Shown here piece after piece: positions 19,012 to 43,450 of a stretch of DNA of 55,055 nt. A program made the translations under genes and the position numbers. Within the stretch, counting starts at the first letter, position 1; the number at the start of each line of letters is the position of its first letter. Origin of the DNA: Bigelowiella natans CCMP2755 (taxonomy: Eukaryota > Protista > Cercozoa); contig ADNK01003515.1 in NCBI GenBank assembly GCA_000320545.1, forward strand, positions 1 to 55,055, in the 5' to 3' direction. Below the pieces are notes generated by a model. The model ran no database searches. It was not told where the DNA came from and saw nothing but the letters and a program-made list of their open reading frames with translations.

Positions 19012-19804
19012 GAAGAATATGAAAATATGAAGAATTTAATGAACATGATCAAGCCTTCGCGCTAAATTACAATTTTAATCTCTTACACCGTCAAGAAAAT
19101 AGTCATCATCTATATGGATGATTATACAGACACATAGCACAACTTAAACGATGATATACCAGTCGGGGATACACTAGAATGATGAGCATCCTCATTGCAC
19201 ATAAAAAGTGAATGGGAAAAGGAAATCAAGAATCACGAAACATAGCAAATTGCACGTTAAGCTTTTTATAAACTACATTGATTTCGTATCATGTGACCTG
19301 GACCTATGAACTGGAATCTGTATCCTAAATTTCATGGTGCAGAATCGAAGGATCAGCGCAAAATGACGATGAATTTTGCATTGTGTGCAACACAGTCATG
19401 TCTCATGAAAAAGGCTAAGCTATGCAACTAAGCTCTGAAAACAAAGGAGGAGGTGTTCAAGTGACATGGGCAATGCAGTGATGAGAAGCAAAACAATGCA
19501 ATGATGAGAAAAACAATGCAATGATTGTGCCAGCAAGAAACATGCTTGACGTGCTGACCACGTCTGGGTGTGCATTGCACGCGTGCACACAGCTAGACAG
19601 ACTAGACCGTGCATGAGAACATGAGAACGTGAACGCAGCGAGGCACACAAACATGCACCATGTCCATGTTTGCGTTCACAGTCTGCAGAGTCCAGCAGTG
19701 TGCAATGTGTGAAACGCGTGCGCGGCGCCACTGTGGCTAGCTGGAATGTGGCAACTCCATTCATTTGCAGAATTGCAAACTGTGAATCGAAGTGCACACC
19801 GCAC

Positions 19805-19820
19805 GCTTGGTTGTCCACTT
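19805..19820 (+). repeat. Left terminal inverted repeat
   Basis: Exact reverse complement of 28259-28274. Confidence 0.75.
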
Positions 19821-20240
19821 CAGAGGCAAAAATGGTCACGATCGACGCAAAATGTGATGCCTGAGAGCGCTGTCAAAAGGCAAAGTTGCGATTGCGCGAA
19901 ACGACATGGCGGGGAAAAATCGCGAACGCAGCGCAGCATGAGAATGAACACGTGCAAATGGGGCAGCGAATCAAACATGTGCATGGCAGATGCGAGAGCA
20001 AACGGAGGCAAGTCAGCAAATTGCAAAGTGAAGCGCGTTTTGAAATGCACGAAAGAGAATTTGTGTTCACAAATGTCACGTTGATTGATTTTGCATTGAA
20101 AAGTGCGTGCAGTTGAGATTGAAACAATGTGGCCAAAAAAGGAAAAATGGACTGCAGATGGAGCTTTTGCTCATCAGGAAAGCGATGAGACACGTGGAAA
20201 TGGGTCATGATGGGCCATCATGGACCTTTTTTTTTTTTTT

Positions 20241-23200
20241 TCACTTTGTCCAAAGATCTTCTGCATCGCGAGCAATCTTTTCGTGCGTGTTTTTGCAGTC
20301 TTCAGAACAAAATCGCAAGTTGAACGCGGTGCTCTTTGTGGGCATGCAAGCCTTGTGGCCGATCAAGTTGCACTCAGCACATTGCGCACGCTCTTTGGGC
20401 AAAACGGGCCTCTCACAAAAGTGACACTGCAGAGGATCGGACGTGTGGCGCTTGATGGACTTGCCCACAGTCTTGGCGGTCTTGGGCTTCTTCGCAGGAG
20501 ACACTCTGGCACGCAAAGTGTGTGGGCGTTTCTCACCTGAGAAACGTGTGGATCACGAACGTGCCAGCGTGTGAGCAACAATCAAAGTGAGTTGTTCACC
20601 TTTGCCTTTGGTTGGACTGGCTTGTTTCTTGCCGAGCTCGGCCAGAGGCATTTCGTCGTCGTCGTCGGCATCATCGGGCGACTTCTCCTCAGAACGGCCA
20701 AGGTCGTGCCAGTGATTTCCAAAACGATGAAGGGCACTGCACTTGGTCAAGGTGGCATTGAACTTGGTCTCGAAAAGCTCTTTCTTGGAAGATGTGTGGT
20801 CGGTCGTGACCACCAAGTGCGTGCTTGTGTCGTGGCGTGTGGTTTTGTTCTGGTTCAGTCTTGGTGGTGGCGTGTTGGACACGTGTGTTTGCACGTGCAA
20901 TGCGTGCATGCTTGCGCACTTGCCTTGGGCAGTGCGACAGGCTTTCTGAGTCATGTGCACACCAGGTGGCATGCACGTGTTCAGTTTCCATCGTGTTTTC
21001 TTTTGTGTGCAAGTTTGTGGACACGTGTGAGCCCAATTGCACGGGTGCGCGTTGGCACGCAAAGCTGGAAAGGTGTGCACGTTGCGTGCGTGGCATGGGG
21101 GTTTCCACGTGATGTCACGTGGGTTTGGATGGCGTGTCAGTGTGACGTGACACGTCAGCATCACGTGGGTGATGGTTGTGTTCTTCCAGTGCAGCTTGAT
21201 GATGAAGCACATGGATGGGGAAGCAGCACTGGCAAGTGATGCAGTTGCCCAATCCACGTGCATGTGTGGGGACAAAACAAGTCAGCAAGTTTGCGCATTG
21301 TGGCCCCGCTTGGGCCAGCAAGACGTGGAACGAGTTGGGTTGCAAAAGGGAACTTTTGCAGCACAAGTTGGCGAAGTGATGTCAGGGAAAAGTGTTGCCC
21401 TTTCAATCTGAAAATGGCGTGATGTGATGTGCTCAACTGAACCAGTTGCAGCAAAGTGAAACGCGCGCGCAAAAGTCAAAAGACCCGCGTGCGAGCGGTG
21501 ATGTCCTCTTGGGAGCTTGTTTTGGCATGCGTGCTCAAGCTCCTCACAATGCACTTTCACCATCAGGGTTTCAGTGTTTTGTTTTCAACAAGCATTGACC
21601 ACATCAACGTGCAACAACAAGCATCAGCTGGCAGCGCACCTGTTGGCTGATTGCACTGGCAGCGGCGCCACAAGATGGATCATCCTTTTCAATCATCGAT
21701 TGGACTTTGGCCTTGGTGCAGTTGGCAATCACCCGGTGGTGGTTCAACTGAGTGCACTTGCGTGTGTGGTGCAACAGTGCACACGCGTCGAACCCTCGTC
21801 CACCACGGGCAATCAGGACAGTGGATCTCTCCTCGCAAAAAGCAGAGCACAGGTGTTCCATCACATCGCCTTTTCCATCCACTGTGAAAGACTTGCCTTC
21901 CACGGTGGTGACCTTTGGACTCGAAGTGATGGTGAGGTTCTCGCTCTTCCCCAAGTCCACACGCGCGCAACGCCCGTTCTTCGCGATGATGTGTGCGTCA
22001 ACCATCGGAGCAAAAGAGGTCTCAGGCTTTTGTGGACGTCGATCGTGCTCGCATGCACAGAGCACGTCGACGTCGTCGTGCCCAAAATTGTCGATGATTT
22101 CCCTGAAAGACTTGGAGTTTTCAGGGAGACACCGAACGGTGAGGGTGAAGTTGCCAGTGATGTGGCGATCCGTGTCCAGCTGTTTGCCAGCGTGGATCTT
22201 GTTGACGTGGATGTTGAGAGTCTTGTCATCGAAAGACTTGTGCAAGACTGCCCGATGTCGAAAGCTCCAACAAGAGTGTCAACGAAGACGTGCCAGCGTG
22301 ATCCAACAAAAAACGTGGAGTCACGAGTGCACTGGCATTTTCGCAACTTCAAAAAGAAGTGCACACCCATTGATTTGCCCTTCGATTGCACGACGATCCC
22401 TGGTTCATCGACGACGACTCCGGTGAGGACTTGGAGGTCGATCGCACCTCCCTTGAGTTGAACTCTTCCTGCATCCTCCACCGTGCGTCTTGCTTTGCAT
22501 TGGTCAACACAACTCTGGAAACTGTTCAATGCAACGTCTGGAATGACCCGCTTGTTCTTCTCTGGAGCCATCTTGTTTTTGACAAGGTGGAACTCAATTG
22601 CGAAACTGAGCCACTTGTCGTTCTGGGGAACTTGAAACTTCTCGCACAATGCCCCCCACGATGACAGGTCACGTTTTTTCGTGAAAAGACTTGTGAGGCA
22701 CTTGGACCCTGAAACACAAGTGACATCAGAACCAAGGCTGCAGTGATGCAAACAAAAAAGGTGACTCACGTTGTTTCCTTTGCAGATTGACGATCGTTTG
22801 CTTGGTGGTGTGCTCTTTGATGCTTGCAACTTTCTTGATCTCTGCCGTGTGACCTTTCTCGTCCATCCCGCGAACCTTGCTGATCCACTTGAAGTCCTTG
22901 GGTGCGTCGTGTGCAGCGTCGGGTCCCGGATTGCAAAGTTCCTCCAAGAGGTTCCAGCTGGATGCGCTCCACTCTGCGAGTCCAACCACCAATCCAAGGC
23001 AGGTCGCACCGCAACCGCCTTTGGAATGCGAGCTGGTGAGCTCTTTCCAATCGCCAATGTGTTCTTTGGCAAACCTGGTGGGACCCGTCCTGGAATCCAT
23101 TGCCTTGGCTTCCAGTGTGAGACTCACAGGTGGGAAGTCTTCACCTCGGCGATGGCATCCCACGTTGTGGACTTGGTGCCGACTTTGTCAGCTTCGTTGA

Positions 23201-24716
23201 CAAGGTGACCGTGTTTGCGGATCACCTTGTTGTCCTCTGGGTCACCTGTGTGGAAAACGTTGCAAGTGACTTTGCCACGACGTTCAGGTTTGCAGGTTGC
23301 CAGTGGTTCTTGCAGTGCGACCCGGCGGTGATTCCCGTCAATCACTTCAGCCCAGAAGCCTTTTTGAACTTGGAGTGCACTCTCCGTCACGCATTGCTTT
23401 GGACCTTCCCGTGAACGTTTGAGAGAAGTTTGGTTCTCTTTGTGCACGGGCGCAGAGGGGCGAACAAGTGCGCCAAGCACAACGTGAACAGACCGGTTCT
23501 TCACCATTGACTCTCGAACCTTGCGCACTTCCCCTTGCCTTGGTTTCCGAGAAGCTGTCTTTCCACGTTCCGGACCGACAAGTTGGTCCAGCTTCAGTTC
23601 GCACGTTCCCAGAAAGACTTTGTCGACAAGTGCCTCCACTTCTGCTCCGAGTTTGACTTTGGTGTCCTCTCCTTCGTTGACACTCTTGTCGCATTCTGAA
23701 CCAAAAGACAGTCAACGTTGTTTTGCACGAACGTGAAAAAACCAAGTGACCTTCAATGGTGATTCCTTTTGGAAGAACACCCTGGAGGTTCAAGTCTGGT
23801 TGACTTGGCGCACCTTTGCCCGGAGTTGTCTTGTCCTTCGTCTTCGCCACAGCCACGAATGACGACGACTGTTCAATGAGAGTTTTGACATTGCGAACGT
23901 GCCAGCACACTCGTCATTGCACTTTCAATTGACGAAACTGCAACACCGATTCTGGTTGGTCTTGAGCTGCAAGTTCCTGGTGGAGTTTCTTCAAGTTCCT
24001 CAGGTGTCTCTTGAGTTCCTTGACAACCTCTGACAACAACAACGATCAAGAAGTTTGTTTTGAAGTGTGCGAAGTTGCTGTCAAGTGCCTTGTTTTGTTT
24101 TGCATTGAGACATCTTGGCGCACTCATTGGATCTTGGACTTGCAATGGCGTTGTTTTCAACCCACTTGTCAAGTTTCAGACCCAGTGTTTCTTTCCCATC
24201 GTCCGGGGAAAACACCGACGCGGTGAGTGTGTTCAGCACTTCCTGGTTCGCGACTTGGCGGCGCTCGGTGTTCTTCAGCGCGTGCACGTCATGCTTCTTC
24301 CATTGGGCCCGCTTGCCTTGTTCGGCGGGCTGTTTGACGTGCAGCTGCCAATGGTTGTTCGGACCTGTCATGCCAGAGAGGCACCAGACAGAATCCAAAA
24401 CAGTGCACTTTCCTGAGAGGTGATGCGAACACGGTGCAGTCAGTGATGTGAACGATGTGAGCTGCGAGTTCCAATCGAAAGTGCAAGTCTGTCACCCGAG
24501 CCCCGTCTCACGTTCTGAACACTTCCCAAAACCGAATCCCTCACACTCGTGGTCGAGCTCACCGCATCCTTGCTTTGGCATTGTGAGGTTCGTGAGTGAG
24601 CGCAGTTGGGCGTGTGCAATCGAACGTTTCCGAAGTGTGCTGCGGCGCCCGTGATGCTCCAGAGCACCCTCTTGCAAGGCGCCAAGTGAGTGACCTCCTC
24701 TCACACCTGTGACCAT
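20241..24716 (-). pseudogene. Element-borne gene: ParB/Srx-like domain + degenerate amino-methyltransferase-like domain + C-terminal PHD finger (Tyr converted to Cys/His)
   Basis: WAEVIDGNHRRVAL is the ParB GxHR motif (about 23315-23360). GVVVDEPG (about 22400-22425) lies at a DPPY-like position. VMEHLCSAFCEERSTVLIARGGRGFDACALLHHTRK (about 21755-21865) resembles motif X-I of beta-class N6/N4 MTases. CHFC-x11-CAECNLIGHKAC...FCSEDC is PHD-like (about 20290-20430). Short GT-AG introns at about 20538-20600 and 23869-23922. Confidence 0.55.
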
Positions 24717-27700
24717 GGTGAAATCACGAAAATCGTCACTGACCGAAAAATCAAAGTTTCAAAATCGACTTTTCGGCACGCATTCGCACCTTCTTTTTTG
24801 GCTCATCGTGCAAAAAGCACACTGCATTGTCGTCACTTCAAGTGACACGCAATTGAAAGTGCAACCTCAAGGTCTGCTTTCAACTCAACACCTCACTTCA
24901 ATTCACAATGCAAAAATGACGTTCAAGAAATCACGTTGCGAGTGCACCAGTGTGTTCGCAAATCACGATGCACGTTTGTGAGCAGTGGAAAAAACGAACG
25001 TCGTCAGTCAAGGTTTTCGTGGAAAGGATTCAGGACAAAATTGTCCAAACTGGTGAGGAGTTCAATGGAATCCGAAACGGACGACGTTCACTTGGATGTT
25101 TTTGAAGCCGGAAGCAAATCGTTCCCAACTGAAGGTCTGTTTCACAACACTTGCAACCAAAAAGTGACATTGCAATTGTCAAACAGGTTTCTTTGGCTTC
25201 GAGTTGTTCGAGGTTTTCTGCACCCACTTCGTCCACAGGAGTGAACGTGACAAGTTTGGTCATTTGTCTTCATTGTCACAATTGAAATGGGCACTGAAAC
25301 AAAAGAAACTCAATGCATGCATCCGACACCTCGTTTCAATGGGTCTGCTGGCTTTGAGTGTGGAACACAAGCGGTTGCAATCCAAGTGGAAACACTTGTT
25401 GACGTCACTGCGGTTCAGAGGATTGTCATCAAATGGCACAAAACTGTTGTCCAAGATTGGGATTGGTGGTGGAAAATTTTTCTTCTTGAGGGGATGCAAA
25501 CAACTCCGTGACGATGGACATGGCAACAGCATGCGTGATCGTGTTGAGAACGATGAAGAGATCAGAGAATCAAAACTGAGCTTGATGTGGATTGACAATC
25601 ACGGGAAAACGTTGGCAGTTTGCACAGTTCAAATGCCAAGAGGAAACAACGTGCACAAAAACTGTCAATGGTGTGCAGCAGCAATTGAGAAGCATCCGAA
25701 TGCAACCTGCCCTTTTGTCAAGAAACCACGTTGGCACATTGAACAGGGACATCCCCAGTGTGACTTCATCTCGTTGTTTGGTGACAAATCCAATTGGTTC
25801 ACGCGTTTCATCAACGATGCTGAGTTCAATTTGTCCCGTGTTGCTTTGTGTCTGAAGTGGGACACCAGGCACGTGCCCATCAAAGTGACAGTTGAGACTG
25901 TGAGAAGAAGTGTGGCAGGTGAAAAGAAAAGGAACGCACACATCAGGGCAGTGAAAAACCGGGTCGACGCTCCACCACACGTGCAACCTTGCGAGGTGAG
26001 TGAACACAACGTCTCGGCAAGTGAAGGACTGTTCAAGGTTTCATTGAGCTTGTGCAAACACAGCGTTCCACAAAGTTGCATGATGACTGTGGTTTCAGAC
26101 GTGGCCATTCATGAAAGGATTTCTGAAGGTCATCCAAAGTGTTCCACTCCATTGCGAGTGCACCAGCGTGTTCGCAACGTTGTGTGTCACCACTCAGGCA
26201 CTTTGGTCAAAAAGTTTCCACGTCTTGGAGCCGAGGAACTTGGTCATGCCTGTTCTTGGGTGGTGGCACTCTTGCAAGTTTCTTTCCATGCTCGCATGGA
26301 GAAACTGCAAAGACGTTTTCGTGCCATTGTTTGCGAAACTGCACCCTGGGTGGAAGTGGAGTTCGAAACCAAAGTGCATTGCGCACATTGTGCACTTCTT
26401 TTCGCTCTCAAGAGTGACGTGTTCCAGCAACAAACGTGAAATTGACGAGTTTTTGGACACCAACTGGAACGTTGACAACAAAGAATCGTTTGACAAGTGT
26501 CCAGGTTGCAGCGTCCATCGTCAACACATCCCAGAGAGGGAAGAACTGGATTCATGGTGCTCTTTGCTTCGGTTTTGCACACCGTTGCTGCACAATCACG
26601 TGATCGCATTGAAAGTCGATGATTTTCAAGTGCTTTTCAGTTTGCACAAAAACGTCATGGCAGCTTTTGCCAATTTTGGGCACAAGCAACGTGGAAGGAA
26701 CACACGCATGAACCACCTGGTTCTTGAGATGCACCGAAATGCTTCCACTGATTTCTGGTCGAACTTCAGTGAAAGCCCAAATCGTGGCAACGAAGAACCT
26801 GGAGAACCTGTGTTGTCAATTTGTGGTCGCAAAGTGCTTCGGGACACCCATTCCAAAGGTGTCAAACACGCAAGTGAACATTTCAAGGTCATGAAAACTG
26901 TGTGGAACTGCACCAAAACACTTGGCACTGCCATGGGAGAAGGACACCTTCAACCGAAACAACCAGAAATCAAAAACAACACTCCGAACTTGAGAAAGAC
27001 ATCCGTTTGGTTCACGGAGCGCATCGAACACCTTGTTCAAGTTGTGAAAGACAAGTTGTCGCACGACGATGACGTGGAATTCACTTGCAACAAGTGCCAT
27101 TCAACTGCAAACAACGTTGATGTGCACAAAACAAAACTCAACAAACAACCTGATTGCACGGACAAAACCCGCATCAAGCATCACATCGTTTCTTTCGAGA
27201 AACAAATCGTTGATCTGATCCACTCTGGCCCAGAATGGTTCCAACGCAACATGGCTGGACATCACCCCGGTCGTGAACCAGGTGGTTCCAACACAGACAA
27301 CACGAGTGAACACAAACACGATGGGAGCGACGAACCCAGTTCAAGTGAAGATGCGATGCAACACGATGAAGACGATGATGAAACAAGCGCAGTGCCAATT
27401 GGCGCAGCCTGGCACAATGCTCACAGGGCAACAGAAAGGCAAAGACTCGAAGAACACACATCACGAGATGCGCACACTGCCTCGGTGACGCTGCATGCAT
27501 GAATCAGCTCATTTTCGCACATTGACATTCTTTTCAATCAGGTTCCAACACGCAAATCAATGAGATTGGACAAAGCACCGAAGCCCATGTGCGCCGACCC
27601 TTGCGCTGACACTGATGTTGGAATGGATGACAGCAGTGGAGATGACATTTTCGTGTTGTCTTCCAGTGATGATGATGACAGCAGTTTTTGTGATTGATTG

Positions 27701-27836
27701 GACGAGTCACATCCATGGAAACGCATTCACATTGTGGCATTTTCTCACGATCTTGACATGCCACCTGGAGATTGATGAGACACGTGCACGTCGCTGATCA
27801 TGGTTGAATGTTGCGAACACACTGGTGTGTTCGCAA
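20553..27836. repeat. Five dispersed copies of a 26-bp palindrome, inferred ancestor TTGCGAATATACTAGTATATTCGCAA
   Basis: Copies at 20553-20578, 23891-23916, 24936-24961, 26152-26177 and 27811-27836; most differences are CA/TG/CG at ancestral TA positions. Confidence 0.8.
24916..27502 (+). pseudogene. Degraded RNase H-fold (DDE-like) transposase, DUF6589-like motif order
   Basis: Ordered motifs LRFRGLSSNGTKLLSKIGIG, LMWIDN(H/Y), VVSDVAI(H/Y), VMPVLGWWHS(C/Y)K and NEEPGE, followed by an acidic tail. Intron at 26129-26197 and an apparent 1-nt frameshift near 26120. No Tyr in more than 800 codons. Confidence 0.55.
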
Positions 27837-28258
27837 CACGTCTTTGTCGTGGCTGAATTGGCATGAAAAGGCATCATTTGTGCCCTGCAGTGTCGAGTGT
27901 GCAACGCTGCAATTGCTTTTTGGTCTGACACGATGTGAATCTCATTCGGCACTCGACGCCATGCGCACAATTGTGCTCAGATGGAACAAATGGCGTGACC
28001 GCATGAGGCGTGCACACGTTTCCGCTTTGTGATGAGAACATCGCCGTTGTCATTGCACTTCGCACATTCATCTTGACGTGTTTCACGAGGTGGTTTTCAC
28101 GTTCACACACATTGCAATCTGAGCTCGCGTTTGCGAGTGGGAGTTTCGATTTGCTTTCGACGCACGTGTGGCGATCAAGATCGCGATTGTGCAGTGAAGC
28201 GCGTTTGTGGCCCTCACACGTGGGATCAGCAACTCGCGGCGCGTGGTTCTTGCATCCA

Positions 28259-28274
28259 AAGTGGACAACCAAGC
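28259..28274 (-). repeat. Right terminal inverted repeat
   Basis: Exact reverse complement of 19805-19820. Confidence 0.75.
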
Positions 28275-28576
28275 ACGTGCTGCCACCTGTGCTAGCTGTG
28301 GACACGCCAGCTCGCACACACTGATTGCACAACAATGATGCATCTAGTGCATGGCTGTGGGCGCTGTGCGCACCGGGCGCTGCAGAATGGCCATGCTGGC
28401 ATGGGATGCACCATGCGCAAAAGCAAAGTGTGAATTGAATCGTGCATGCAAGCTAGCACGTGTTAGGTGTGTTTGTGCAACAATGAACATGCGACTGGTC
28501 ATGCATGTCTAGATGCAATTATCGTGGTGTTTGTGCACAGTGCCAGAGTAGATTTGTGCGCACATGTGTGCTCAAT

Positions 28577-42519: not shown

Positions 42520-43450
42520 GTGACTCATGTGTGAGTAGTCGATGACCGCTAACCCATGCCAACAGCGTTCCTACCTGCATACAATTGTGCATGATCATGA
42601 TCACATGTGCAGTCTCAGAAATGCAAATTGAACTCGTCAACGATTTGAGTGAATGACAAACAAGTTGCAGCAAGACAGCAGTCGACACCATTGTCAAGCA
42701 GCGCGGCAACTGTGACATCCTAGCTTCTTGCAACCACTAAACCATGCTAGCATGCCAGCATGCTAGCATGCACAGCAATCTAGCAATGGAGCACCATGCG
42801 CGCTGACTTGCAAGCTAAGCCTCTCTGGCTCTAGCACTTCTAGGCATTCTAGCATTGCTAGATTGTGCCTGGTCTAGCTAGCTAGCAGTCTCTGGGTCTA
42901 GCAGTGCCCATCTTGCATGCAAGGTTGCAAACCGATCGATCGATCGATTGAGCTAGCGAAGCTGGCACGGCTAGCCAGCTTGAGAGCACATGCTTCTGTG
43001 GCCCCTTGATGGGCCACACAGCGTGTGCACGTGCGAACATGTGCAGTTCTGTTCGCATGTTCTAGCTTCATCACACACGACCTAGACGACCTGTTGTGCA
43101 CAAAAAACACGTGCAGCAGATGTCATGTGACACACATGAATTCAGCCACATGTGTCTCAGAGAACACATGTGTTTTGATCCGGTGCGCTCCATGGCTAGA
43201 TAGCCCCTCAATGGGCCATGCATGCTGGCATGACGTAGCGAGATGACGAGATCTAGCTAGCTAGCTAGGGATCCAGAGATGTCTAGGTGTGCTGCACTGC
43301 ACTAGTCCATGTCAATCATCATGCATGAAGCAAAATGATGTTGTTACGCCCTACTAGCTTGCTAGCCTAGCGCATGCGAACAATGTCCACTAGTTTAGAA
43401 TGTAGCCGTGCAGCTGCATGCAATGAATGTGCGTGGATGCATGTTGGCGC
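42520..43450. other. TA-depleted, strongly CTAG-enriched intergenic patch between convergent gene ends
   Basis: About 25 CTAG by eye, including CTAGCTAGCTAG runs; few other TAs; abundant TGCA/CATG/CACA. Confidence 0.75.

Follow-up and report, generated by a model that had tools for sequence, protein, structure and literature searches.

A likely family of cut-and-paste DNA transposons in Bigelowiella natans, with a ParB-methylase-like accessory gene and a copy erased of all TA dinucleotides

Contig ADNK01003515.1 from the nuclear genome of the chlorarachniophyte alga Bigelowiella natans CCMP2755 (assembly GCA_000320545.1) was analysed over its positions 1 to 55,055, referred to below as the window. 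Positions 19806–28273 of its forward strand contained an element with terminal inverted repeats (TIRs) and flanking target site duplications (TSDs), two divergent genes, six copies of a 26-bp palindrome and a nested repeat, all within a stretch free of TA dinucleotides (Table 1). The gene on the plus strand (gene A) was predicted to encode a transposase, and the gene on the minus strand (gene B) an accessory protein with putative ParB-like, methyltransferase-like and zinc-finger parts. We consider it likely that B. natans has an autonomous family of cut-and-paste DNA transposons and that the element is one of its dead copies. This is a joint judgement on the transposon family, both genes, the interpretation of the palindromes and of the accessory protein as a reader, and the state of the window copy.

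The inverted arms at 19805–19832 and 28247–28274 were 28 nt long and 86% complementary, and their outermost 16 nt were a perfect match. In comparison with the other copies, the outermost base of each arm was assigned to a 4-bp target duplication, leaving an element proper that runs from CTTGG to CCAAG with TIRs of 27 nt. An earlier reading made from the letters of the window (the sequence-only reading) had described a TIR transposon with 16-bp perfect repeats at 19805–28274; its arms were real, and its ends lay one base too far out on each side. A DNA search of the whole assembly retrieved three further full-length copies (contigs C3106, C274 and C2208), one copy split across contigs C142 and C1576, and truncated copies. 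All copies began with CTTGGTTGTCC and finished with its complement. Deletion derivatives resembling MITEs (transposable elements of the miniature inverted-repeat type), of approximately 0.85 kb (L032, C3601:131787-132642) and 1.15 kb (L031, C2996:86102-87254), had kept only the ends, with intact termini and a 4-bp duplication of their own. Perfect 4-bp duplications flanked all six copies in which both flanks were readable (CACG in the window, ACGG, ACAT, CATG, CCAG and CTAG). The search for copies, as had been proposed, thus showed the same TIR pair bounding other copies at independent sites, each with its own duplication. The family unit measured approximately 7.6 kb, and the window copy 8.47 kb because a repeat resembling a solo long terminal repeat (LTR) was inserted in it.

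Table 1. Features of the element in the window. Positions are those of the window; strand is left empty where none applies.
Feature	Position	Strand	Evidence or remark
TSD, left copy, CACG	19802-19805		identical four bases at 28274-28277
Left TIR, begins CTTGGTTGTCC	19806-19832	+	same terminus in every copy
Last exon of gene B, C4HC3 zinc finger (PHD/C1-like), stop TGA 20241-20243	20241-20536	-	Pfam C1_1/PHD and conserved Cys/His
Methyltransferase-like exon of gene B, split by the nested repeat and the 11-bp insertion 22233-22243, boundaries approximate	20600-22300	-	six-homologue profile against PDB
Middle exon of gene B, holds the non-conserved DEPG	22367-22708	-	splice sites from copy alignment; homologous to Amorphochlora ORF L013:7126-8361
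ParB/DndB-like exon of gene B, VIDGNHRR, frameshifted by the 14-bp insertion 23113-23126	22770-23695	-	Pfam DndB and TIGR03187 matches
5' exons and introns of gene B, approximate; candidate start ATG 24581-24579 or 24716	23696-24581	-	open reading frames (ORFs), tblastn of C2208 exons
Predicted transposase gene (gene A); exons 25065-25134, 25187-26128, 26198-27502; introns 25135-25186, 26129-26197	25065-27502	+	JGI model Bigna1 147291 = P0002
26-bp palindrome, copy 1	20553-20578		intron before zinc-finger exon
26-bp palindrome, copy 2	22321-22346		intron before methylase-like exon
26-bp palindrome, copy 3	23891-23916		upstream of ParB exon
26-bp palindrome, copy 4	24936-24961		spacer between divergent genes
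26-bp palindrome, copy 5	26152-26177		transposase intron 2, intron position common to Amorphochlora
26-bp palindrome, copy 6	27811-27836		downstream of transposase stop
Nested multi-copy repeat, 877 bp, TG...CA ends, 5-6-bp duplication AGATG/AAGATG, TA-free	20795-21671		missing from all other element copies
TA-free stretch, 8.55 kb, zero TA dinucleotides	19739-28292		dinucleotide counts
Right TIR	28247-28273	-	same terminus in every copy
TSD, right copy, CACG	28274-28277		matches left copy

In the TA-free stretch the rho values were 0.00 for TA, 1.60 for CA and 1.56 for TG (the latter two approximately 1.6 times the expected value), and TA occurred at 50–130 per kb elsewhere in the window. A comparison of four copies gave 126 aligned dinucleotide sites at which one copy had CA where another had TG, and 124 additional sites that were still TA in at least one of the four. 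Together these 250 sites made up approximately one third of all variable columns. All full-length copies were TA-depleted; the window copy retained none, and the least mutated copy (C2208) had 125 TA left, nearly all in its accessory-gene half and almost none in its transposase half. Hypermutation was thus patchy inside that single copy (L004 1500-8977). At the 22 tyrosines of the transposase of Amorphochlora amoebiformis, the B. natans copies showed cysteine or histidine at 10–13 and tyrosine at 0–1. At least one splice acceptor of the window copy was destroyed, its TTAG having changed to TTGG. Host hypermutation of TpA to TpG or CpA had erased every TA in the window copy. Since TGA arises only from TAA, TA-to-TG/CA changes create no new in-frame stop; the ORFs therefore remained open, which explains the long open 'genes' that gene finders called here.

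This type of mutation has been described in B. natans, in which mutation accumulation showed TpA in two viral inserts being converted to TpG or CpA at a rate approximately 1000 times that of the background (10.64898/2026.01.13.699255). The same study found TA-depleted genes and clusters across the genome and proposed that the hypermutation works via adenine deamination (10.64898/2026.01.13.699255). Its Table S6 of 324 low-TpA genes includes both JGI models of the present transposon family, without annotation (10.64898/2026.01.13.699255). The absence of TA, the excess of CA and TG and values within the thresholds of that preprint are common to both cases. The preprint dealt with viral inserts, whereas the target here was a DNA transposon family and the erasure was complete.

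The window copy was dead: its TA dinucleotides were erased, its methylase-like exon was split by the nested repeat, and both genes were frameshifted. An 11-bp insertion (22233-22243) and a 14-bp insertion (23113-23126) shifted the frame of the accessory gene. A 1-bp insertion near 26121-26123 shifted that of the transposase gene, a frameshift which the JGI model masks with an invented intron. The nested repeat had many partial copies at other genomic loci, its last 370 bp or so being the most abundant, and is most simply explained as a solo LTR inserted into gene B. A 6-bp extra at 20786 was likewise specific to the window. Seven short insertions of 5–33 bp were present in the window copy alone (at 22233, 22289, 23113, 23853, 24820, 25507 and 25616), some of which resembled local duplications.

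The transposase ORF comprised approximately 790 codons. Scanning every long ORF from the window and from C2208 against the Pfam, NCBIfam and PADLOC libraries returned sub-threshold matches only, and none for the transposase ORF; a word-index protein search matched it only to JGI Bigna1 147291 (this copy) and 70429. A profile search of 1.84 billion representative proteins recovered 39 relatives, all unannotated and none with a Pfam family, including an intact, unmutated 793-residue protein of A. amoebiformis (P0057) and a 725-residue protein on metagenomic contigs of 8–10 kb. The 39 proteins had the blocks WxDN, xDxNIY, GWWHxYK and NEExGE in common, and WxDN, xDxNI and NEExGE were still there in the window copy. 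The transposase-like motifs DN, SD, GWWH and NEExGE picked out by the sequence-only reading were present and corresponded to the conserved blocks of this family.

An AF2 model of P0057 (pLDDT 78.7, pTM 0.76) was compared with known structures in a wide fold search. The P-element transposase matched with Z 8.8 over 334 residues and the Hermes hAT transposase with Z 8.2 over 301, followed by many retroviral integrase cores (Z approximately 8.2–8.7, with about 125–140 residues aligned), RAG1, Transib and Tn5. A Foldseek search of the model against the PDB yielded helical noise only. In the model, D172 was positioned on the first strand, D334 just past the fourth strand and E540/541 at the start of a helix, with a helical insertion of 170 residues between the second aspartate and the glutamate. 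Because the list consisted uniformly of DDE enzymes and included alignments of more than 300 residues, gene A was assigned, Z values notwithstanding, to the RNase H-fold DDE transposases. The fold that had been sought was thus recovered in the modelled Amorphochlora homologue, and gene A is predicted to encode such an enzyme, from a family without a Pfam model, whose large alpha-helical insertion is of the kind seen in P-element, hAT and RAG1-type enzymes. It resembles the P-element, Hermes hAT and RAG1/Transib enzymes in its RNase H-type DDE core, which a large alpha-helical insertion divides, and in a W-H motif after strand 5, where hAT-type enzymes carry CxxH. It has no detectable sequence similarity to them. 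P and hAT elements generate target duplications of 8 bp and Transib elements of 5 bp, and the 4-bp duplication of the B. natans family differs from both.

Both divergent genes were spliced, as the sequence-only reading had claimed. Canonical GT..AG introns were visible in C2208, and the transcript-derived P0057 mapped across the introns of the Amorphochlora locus, one of which was located at the position of B. natans intron 2. A 543-residue open frame in copy C2141 was considered as a case of intron loss and rejected, being merely read-through of a TA-free intron.

The divergent arrangement of genes A and B was also found in Amorphochlora (L013), on a Logan contig (L018) and on JGI metagenome contigs (L014-L017), and was partly present on an ENA contig (L019). 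In the JGI element the TIRs were 36 nt long and 8.2 kb apart; the ends of L014 showed no clear target duplication. As the pairing has been kept in Amorphochlora and three marine or metagenomic relatives, gene B belongs to the element and is not a captured host gene. The Amorphochlora copy (L013 8315-8902) was internally deleted, lacking approximately 110 residues of the ParB core including GxHRR. Right after its transposase gene the contig ended in an (ATTCC)n satellite (L013 12330-12454), and the right end was unassembled.

Gene B was searched exon by exon, with the less mutated copy C2208 and the intact relatives as references. Its predicted product of approximately 1000 residues had three parts: a ParB/DndB-like N-terminal part, a beta-class methyltransferase-like part and a C-terminal C4HC3 zinc finger. 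The ParB exon matched Pfam DndB (PF14072) with E 1.7e-3 in the window and 1.1e-4 in C2208 (17.9–23.2 bits, threshold 29.1), and TIGR03187 DGQHR with E 0.01 (15.7 bits, threshold 58.9). When the DndB hidden Markov model was run on the whole 91-Mb genome, the sole candidate was a copy of this element. The exon contained VIDGNHRR, a motif of the DGxHR type of the ParB/Srx superfamily, and G-x-H-R-R and several upstream positions were invariant among B. natans, L018 and L014. These matches point weakly to a ParB/DndB-like N-terminal domain. Word-index protein searches with the ParB-like ORF of L018 and the methylase-like ORF of Amorphochlora found only the queries themselves or B. natans paralogues, and phmmer searches of single exons against the PDB found nothing.

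A profile of six homologues searched against the PDB had DNA methyltransferases of the beta class as its top seven matches, including M.RsrI and CcrM. The best match, 5hek (DpnA type), had an E value of 1.5e-4 and covered the AdoMet-binding motif I region (PFMGSGTT). The AdoMet-binding G-x-G was invariant in the six homologues, and the window copy read RGGRGF. The segment IAHGGQGFD had been considered as the ExoII motif of a DEDD exonuclease and was dropped, since the profile matched methylase motif I. Motif IV, aligned at the invariant aspartate, was DTLV for B. natans, DGDAY for Amorphochlora, DSPS for L018 and DGPY for the metagenomic L014. The catalytic motif (D/S/N)PP(Y/F/W) was absent from both B. 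natans and Amorphochlora, and even the least mutated B. natans copy had DTLV. The L014 version combined its near-canonical DGPY with AGSG and matched PF01555 with E 0.026 (14.9 bits, gathering threshold 26.7). By its motifs, the domain is thus methyltransferase-like with the AdoMet glycines kept and the catalytic motif lost in both chlorarachniophytes. As the motif is also altered in the unmutated relatives (DGDAY in Amorphochlora, DSPS in L018), it decayed before the hypermutation.

The last exon had the pattern C-x2-C-x11-C-x2-C-x4-H-x2-C-x12-C-x3-C, the cysteines and histidine of which were conserved in Amorphochlora and L018. The window exon matched Pfam C1_1 with E 2e-4 and PHD with E 8e-3, and the C2208 exon matched PHD with E 1.5e-3. 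All of these matches were sub-threshold (PHD 16.6–18.9 bits, cut-off 24), and C1_1 scored equal to or better than PHD. By pattern and conservation, the exon encodes a predicted C4HC3 zinc finger that is PHD- or C1-like.

The ParB-methyltransferase-PHD gene of the sequence-only reading was therefore retained in part. Its motifs VIDGNHR and GGRG were present and conserved, and a methyltransferase-like region with a degenerate catalytic motif was found; the ParB and PHD matches stayed below threshold, and C1 did as well as PHD. The tetrapeptide DEPG, which had been taken for methylase motif IV, had to be given up. It varied between copies (KKLG, EKPG, EKLG) and stood opposite LEHVG in Amorphochlora, and the invariant aspartate was located one exon onward, in VFVD-TLV.

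Each element contained six 26-bp palindromes, four in introns, one between the genes and one after the transposase gene. A genome-wide search with a pattern tolerant of TA decay found 36 sites, all on copy-bearing contigs, against one site for the reversed control. Each relative had its own, different palindrome of 20–30 bp, with 3 to 15 copies distributed over introns and spacers (L014, 15 sites; L018, 6; L019, at least 4; Amorphochlora, 3). The most economical reading, which we infer, is that the palindromes are parS-like sites for the ParB-like protein. The ParB-like domain would recognise the palindromes of its own family, and its binding would recruit the other two parts of the protein, methylase-like and zinc finger, to the DNA or chromatin of the element itself. 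The gene B protein of this lineage is probably a binding or reader module and not an enzyme.

It is possible, if in our estimate rather unlikely, that the palindromes are something other than ParB sites, namely internal transposase-binding sites, hairpins that aid splicing or relics of intron-making small insertions. Four of the six are located in short introns of 63–69 nt, the Amorphochlora palindrome occurs in the same transposase intron, and repeated transposase-binding motifs occur in many DNA transposons. However, two of the six are found outside introns, in the intergenic spacer and downstream of the transposase gene, and the intron sequence around the palindromes is not common to them, so that they are not copies of a single insertion. 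As to transposase binding, the palindromes are spread over the whole element with no clustering at its ends, and they do not resemble the TIR. Moreover, every palindrome-bearing relative also has a ParB-like gene.

Starting from the parS-like reading, we tentatively hypothesize that each transposon lineage has a co-evolving system of self-recognition made up of its accessory protein and its palindromes, an extension that we hold to be doubtful for now. ParB-like domains would load at the family-specific palindromes in introns and spacers and coat the element, which would thereby gain a DNA-binding module derived from a methylase and a chromatin reader of the zinc-finger type. The purpose may be to resist host silencing or hypermutation, or to assemble a transposition complex. 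If true, this would be a eukaryotic transposon with a bacterial partition-type DNA clamp that distinguishes self from host DNA.

Several results weigh against the overall reading of the element. The transposase fold-search Z values of approximately 8–9 are in a range that the tool itself rates as middling. The domain order of gene B was deduced from the order of its exons in searches made exon by exon only. In every search the ParB-like domain scored below curated thresholds, the AF2 model of the ParB exon was poor (pLDDT 48.4), its fold search gave nothing above Z 3.9, and the ParB profile had no match in the PDB. PF01555 found no B. natans exon, and the methylase call consists of the C-terminal 80 residues and the alignment of one invariant aspartate. 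Finally, that the ParB-like domain binds the palindromes is conjecture, and a role with the transposase or in splicing would be equally possible.

Gene B might instead encode an active, or recently active, adenine methyltransferase that shields the adenines of the element from TpA-directed deamination as a counter-defence, a possibility to which we give little credence. The domain resembles the N6A/N4C methyltransferases of the beta class, the most distant relative retains the near-canonical DGPY and AGSG, and the host attacks TpA, with adenine deamination suggested as the mechanism (10.64898/2026.01.13.699255). However, motif IV is degenerate in L018, in the unmutated Amorphochlora and in every B. 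natans copy; its loss is therefore older than the hypermutation and not a result of it. Undoing TA-to-TG/CA changes in DTLV never yields a PP-aromatic motif. The depletion of TA in every full-length copy, complete in the window, also speaks against such a shield. The suggestion of the sequence-only reading that gene B was a counter-defence or decoy against a TA-directed attack is accordingly unsupported and disfavoured.

That the stretch descends from an integrated virus, virophage or transpoviron, the class of DNA reported as the target of the hypermutation (10.64898/2026.01.13.699255), and not from a cellular transposon is very improbable: B. natans carries many viral inserts and transpoviron-like repeats (10.64898/2026.01.13.699255) and ParB-methylase fusions are typical of phages and plasmids, but the element has TIRs with 4-bp duplications at six independent sites, MITE-like derivatives, a DDE transposase fold and spliceosomal introns common to two genera, and neither the ORF lists nor the family library scans contained a capsid, polymerase or packaging gene.

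Among known systems, the bacterial and phage ParB-methyltransferase fusions and the beta-class methyltransferases (DpnA type, M.RsrI, CcrM) resemble gene B in the order of a ParB-like part before a methylase and in the beta-class permutation, in which motif IV precedes motif I. Gene B differs from the bacterial and phage fusions in being eukaryotic and intron-split, with an added zinc finger and, in chlorarachniophytes, a degenerate catalytic motif. The DIRS1 retrotransposon likewise has an adenine-methylase-like domain on a mobile element, judged inactive from its motifs; that domain, however, belongs to the PCIF1-related methylase group and is part of a retroelement polyprotein without a ParB domain.

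Sola elements generate 4-bp target duplications, a value that reportedly goes back to Bao et al. in 2009. Sola1-1_Ec32 of Ectocarpus encodes on its opposite strand a 1104-residue protein with ParB-like and N4C/N6A methylase domains, and transposons of green and red algae are said to carry similar proteins (Genome Biol 2025, PMC12477816). It is, like the B. natans element, a TIR transposon whose transposase has no Pfam family and which carries a ParB and N4C/N6A methyltransferase gene on the opposite strand. The two differ in size and host (21.5 kb in Ectocarpus, 7.6 kb in a rhizarian), and the B. natans element has lost motif IV and bears a zinc finger at the C-terminus and six dispersed palindromes, features that the description of Sola1-1_Ec32 does not mention. 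By the 4-bp duplication and the architecture, membership in Sola1 would fit; the ParB-methylase gene is a feature of one described Sola1 family and not part of the superfamily definition. The absence of Pfam matches agrees with the lack of a Pfam model for Sola (PMC5751038), which fits and proves nothing. The label 'unclassified' of the sequence-only reading thus holds as far as Pfam is concerned, and is qualified by the 4-bp duplication and the opposite-strand ParB-methylase gene that match Sola1-1_Ec32.

Red algal transposons carry accessory genes with ParB and PF01555 domains beside inverted-repeat arrays, and it has been proposed that the accessory protein binds and modifies its own transposon (10.1101/2025.02.11.637652). 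The Plavaka genes PAG2 and PAG3 of red algae have the PF01555 methylase, the ParB-like domains and the nearby inverted repeats in common with the B. natans element. In contrast, their two domains are located on separate proteins and are fused to SET and 2OG-oxygenase domains, and their carriers are EnSpm/Plavaka, Zisupton or Fanzor elements. The red algal repeats form tandem arrays beside the gene, whereas the B. natans palindromes are dispersed through introns.

TA hypermutation (the 2026 preprint) and ParB-methylase accessory genes on algal transposons (2025) were already known. The B. natans family represents a variant from a eukaryotic supergroup new to this kind of element; its catalytic motif has decayed, a zinc finger has been added and its palindromes are scattered through introns. 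Its description supplies an identity for two of the genes that stand without annotation in the published list of TA-depleted genes of B. natans and shows that TA hypermutation reaches completion on an ordinary DNA transposon, beyond viral inserts. It also extends the algal ParB-methylase transposon class to Rhizaria and uncultured marine protists. Two testable features are added to that class: the loss of the catalytic motif with the fold kept, and a lineage-specific palindrome repeated through introns.

TA depletion continued past the ends of the element, over approximately 375 bp on the left (19429-19805) and 20 bp on the right (within 28274-28450), and the few TA remaining near the ends were located in CTAG. 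The window contained two other TA-free stretches, 1-1855 (1.86 kb) and 54532-54835 (0.3 kb), the former without similarity to the element. In 15 of the 156 CTAG sites of the window, CTAG was located between duplicated tetranucleotides (for example at 19589, 37906, 38127, 42743-42854 and 54174). The same context was found at no more than 1.7% of the sites for most other 4-base palindromes and at up to 5.6% for CGCG, ATAT/TATA repeats excluded. CTAG with flanking tetranucleotide duplications is consistent with excision scars of an element that has CT...AG ends and duplicates 4 bp.

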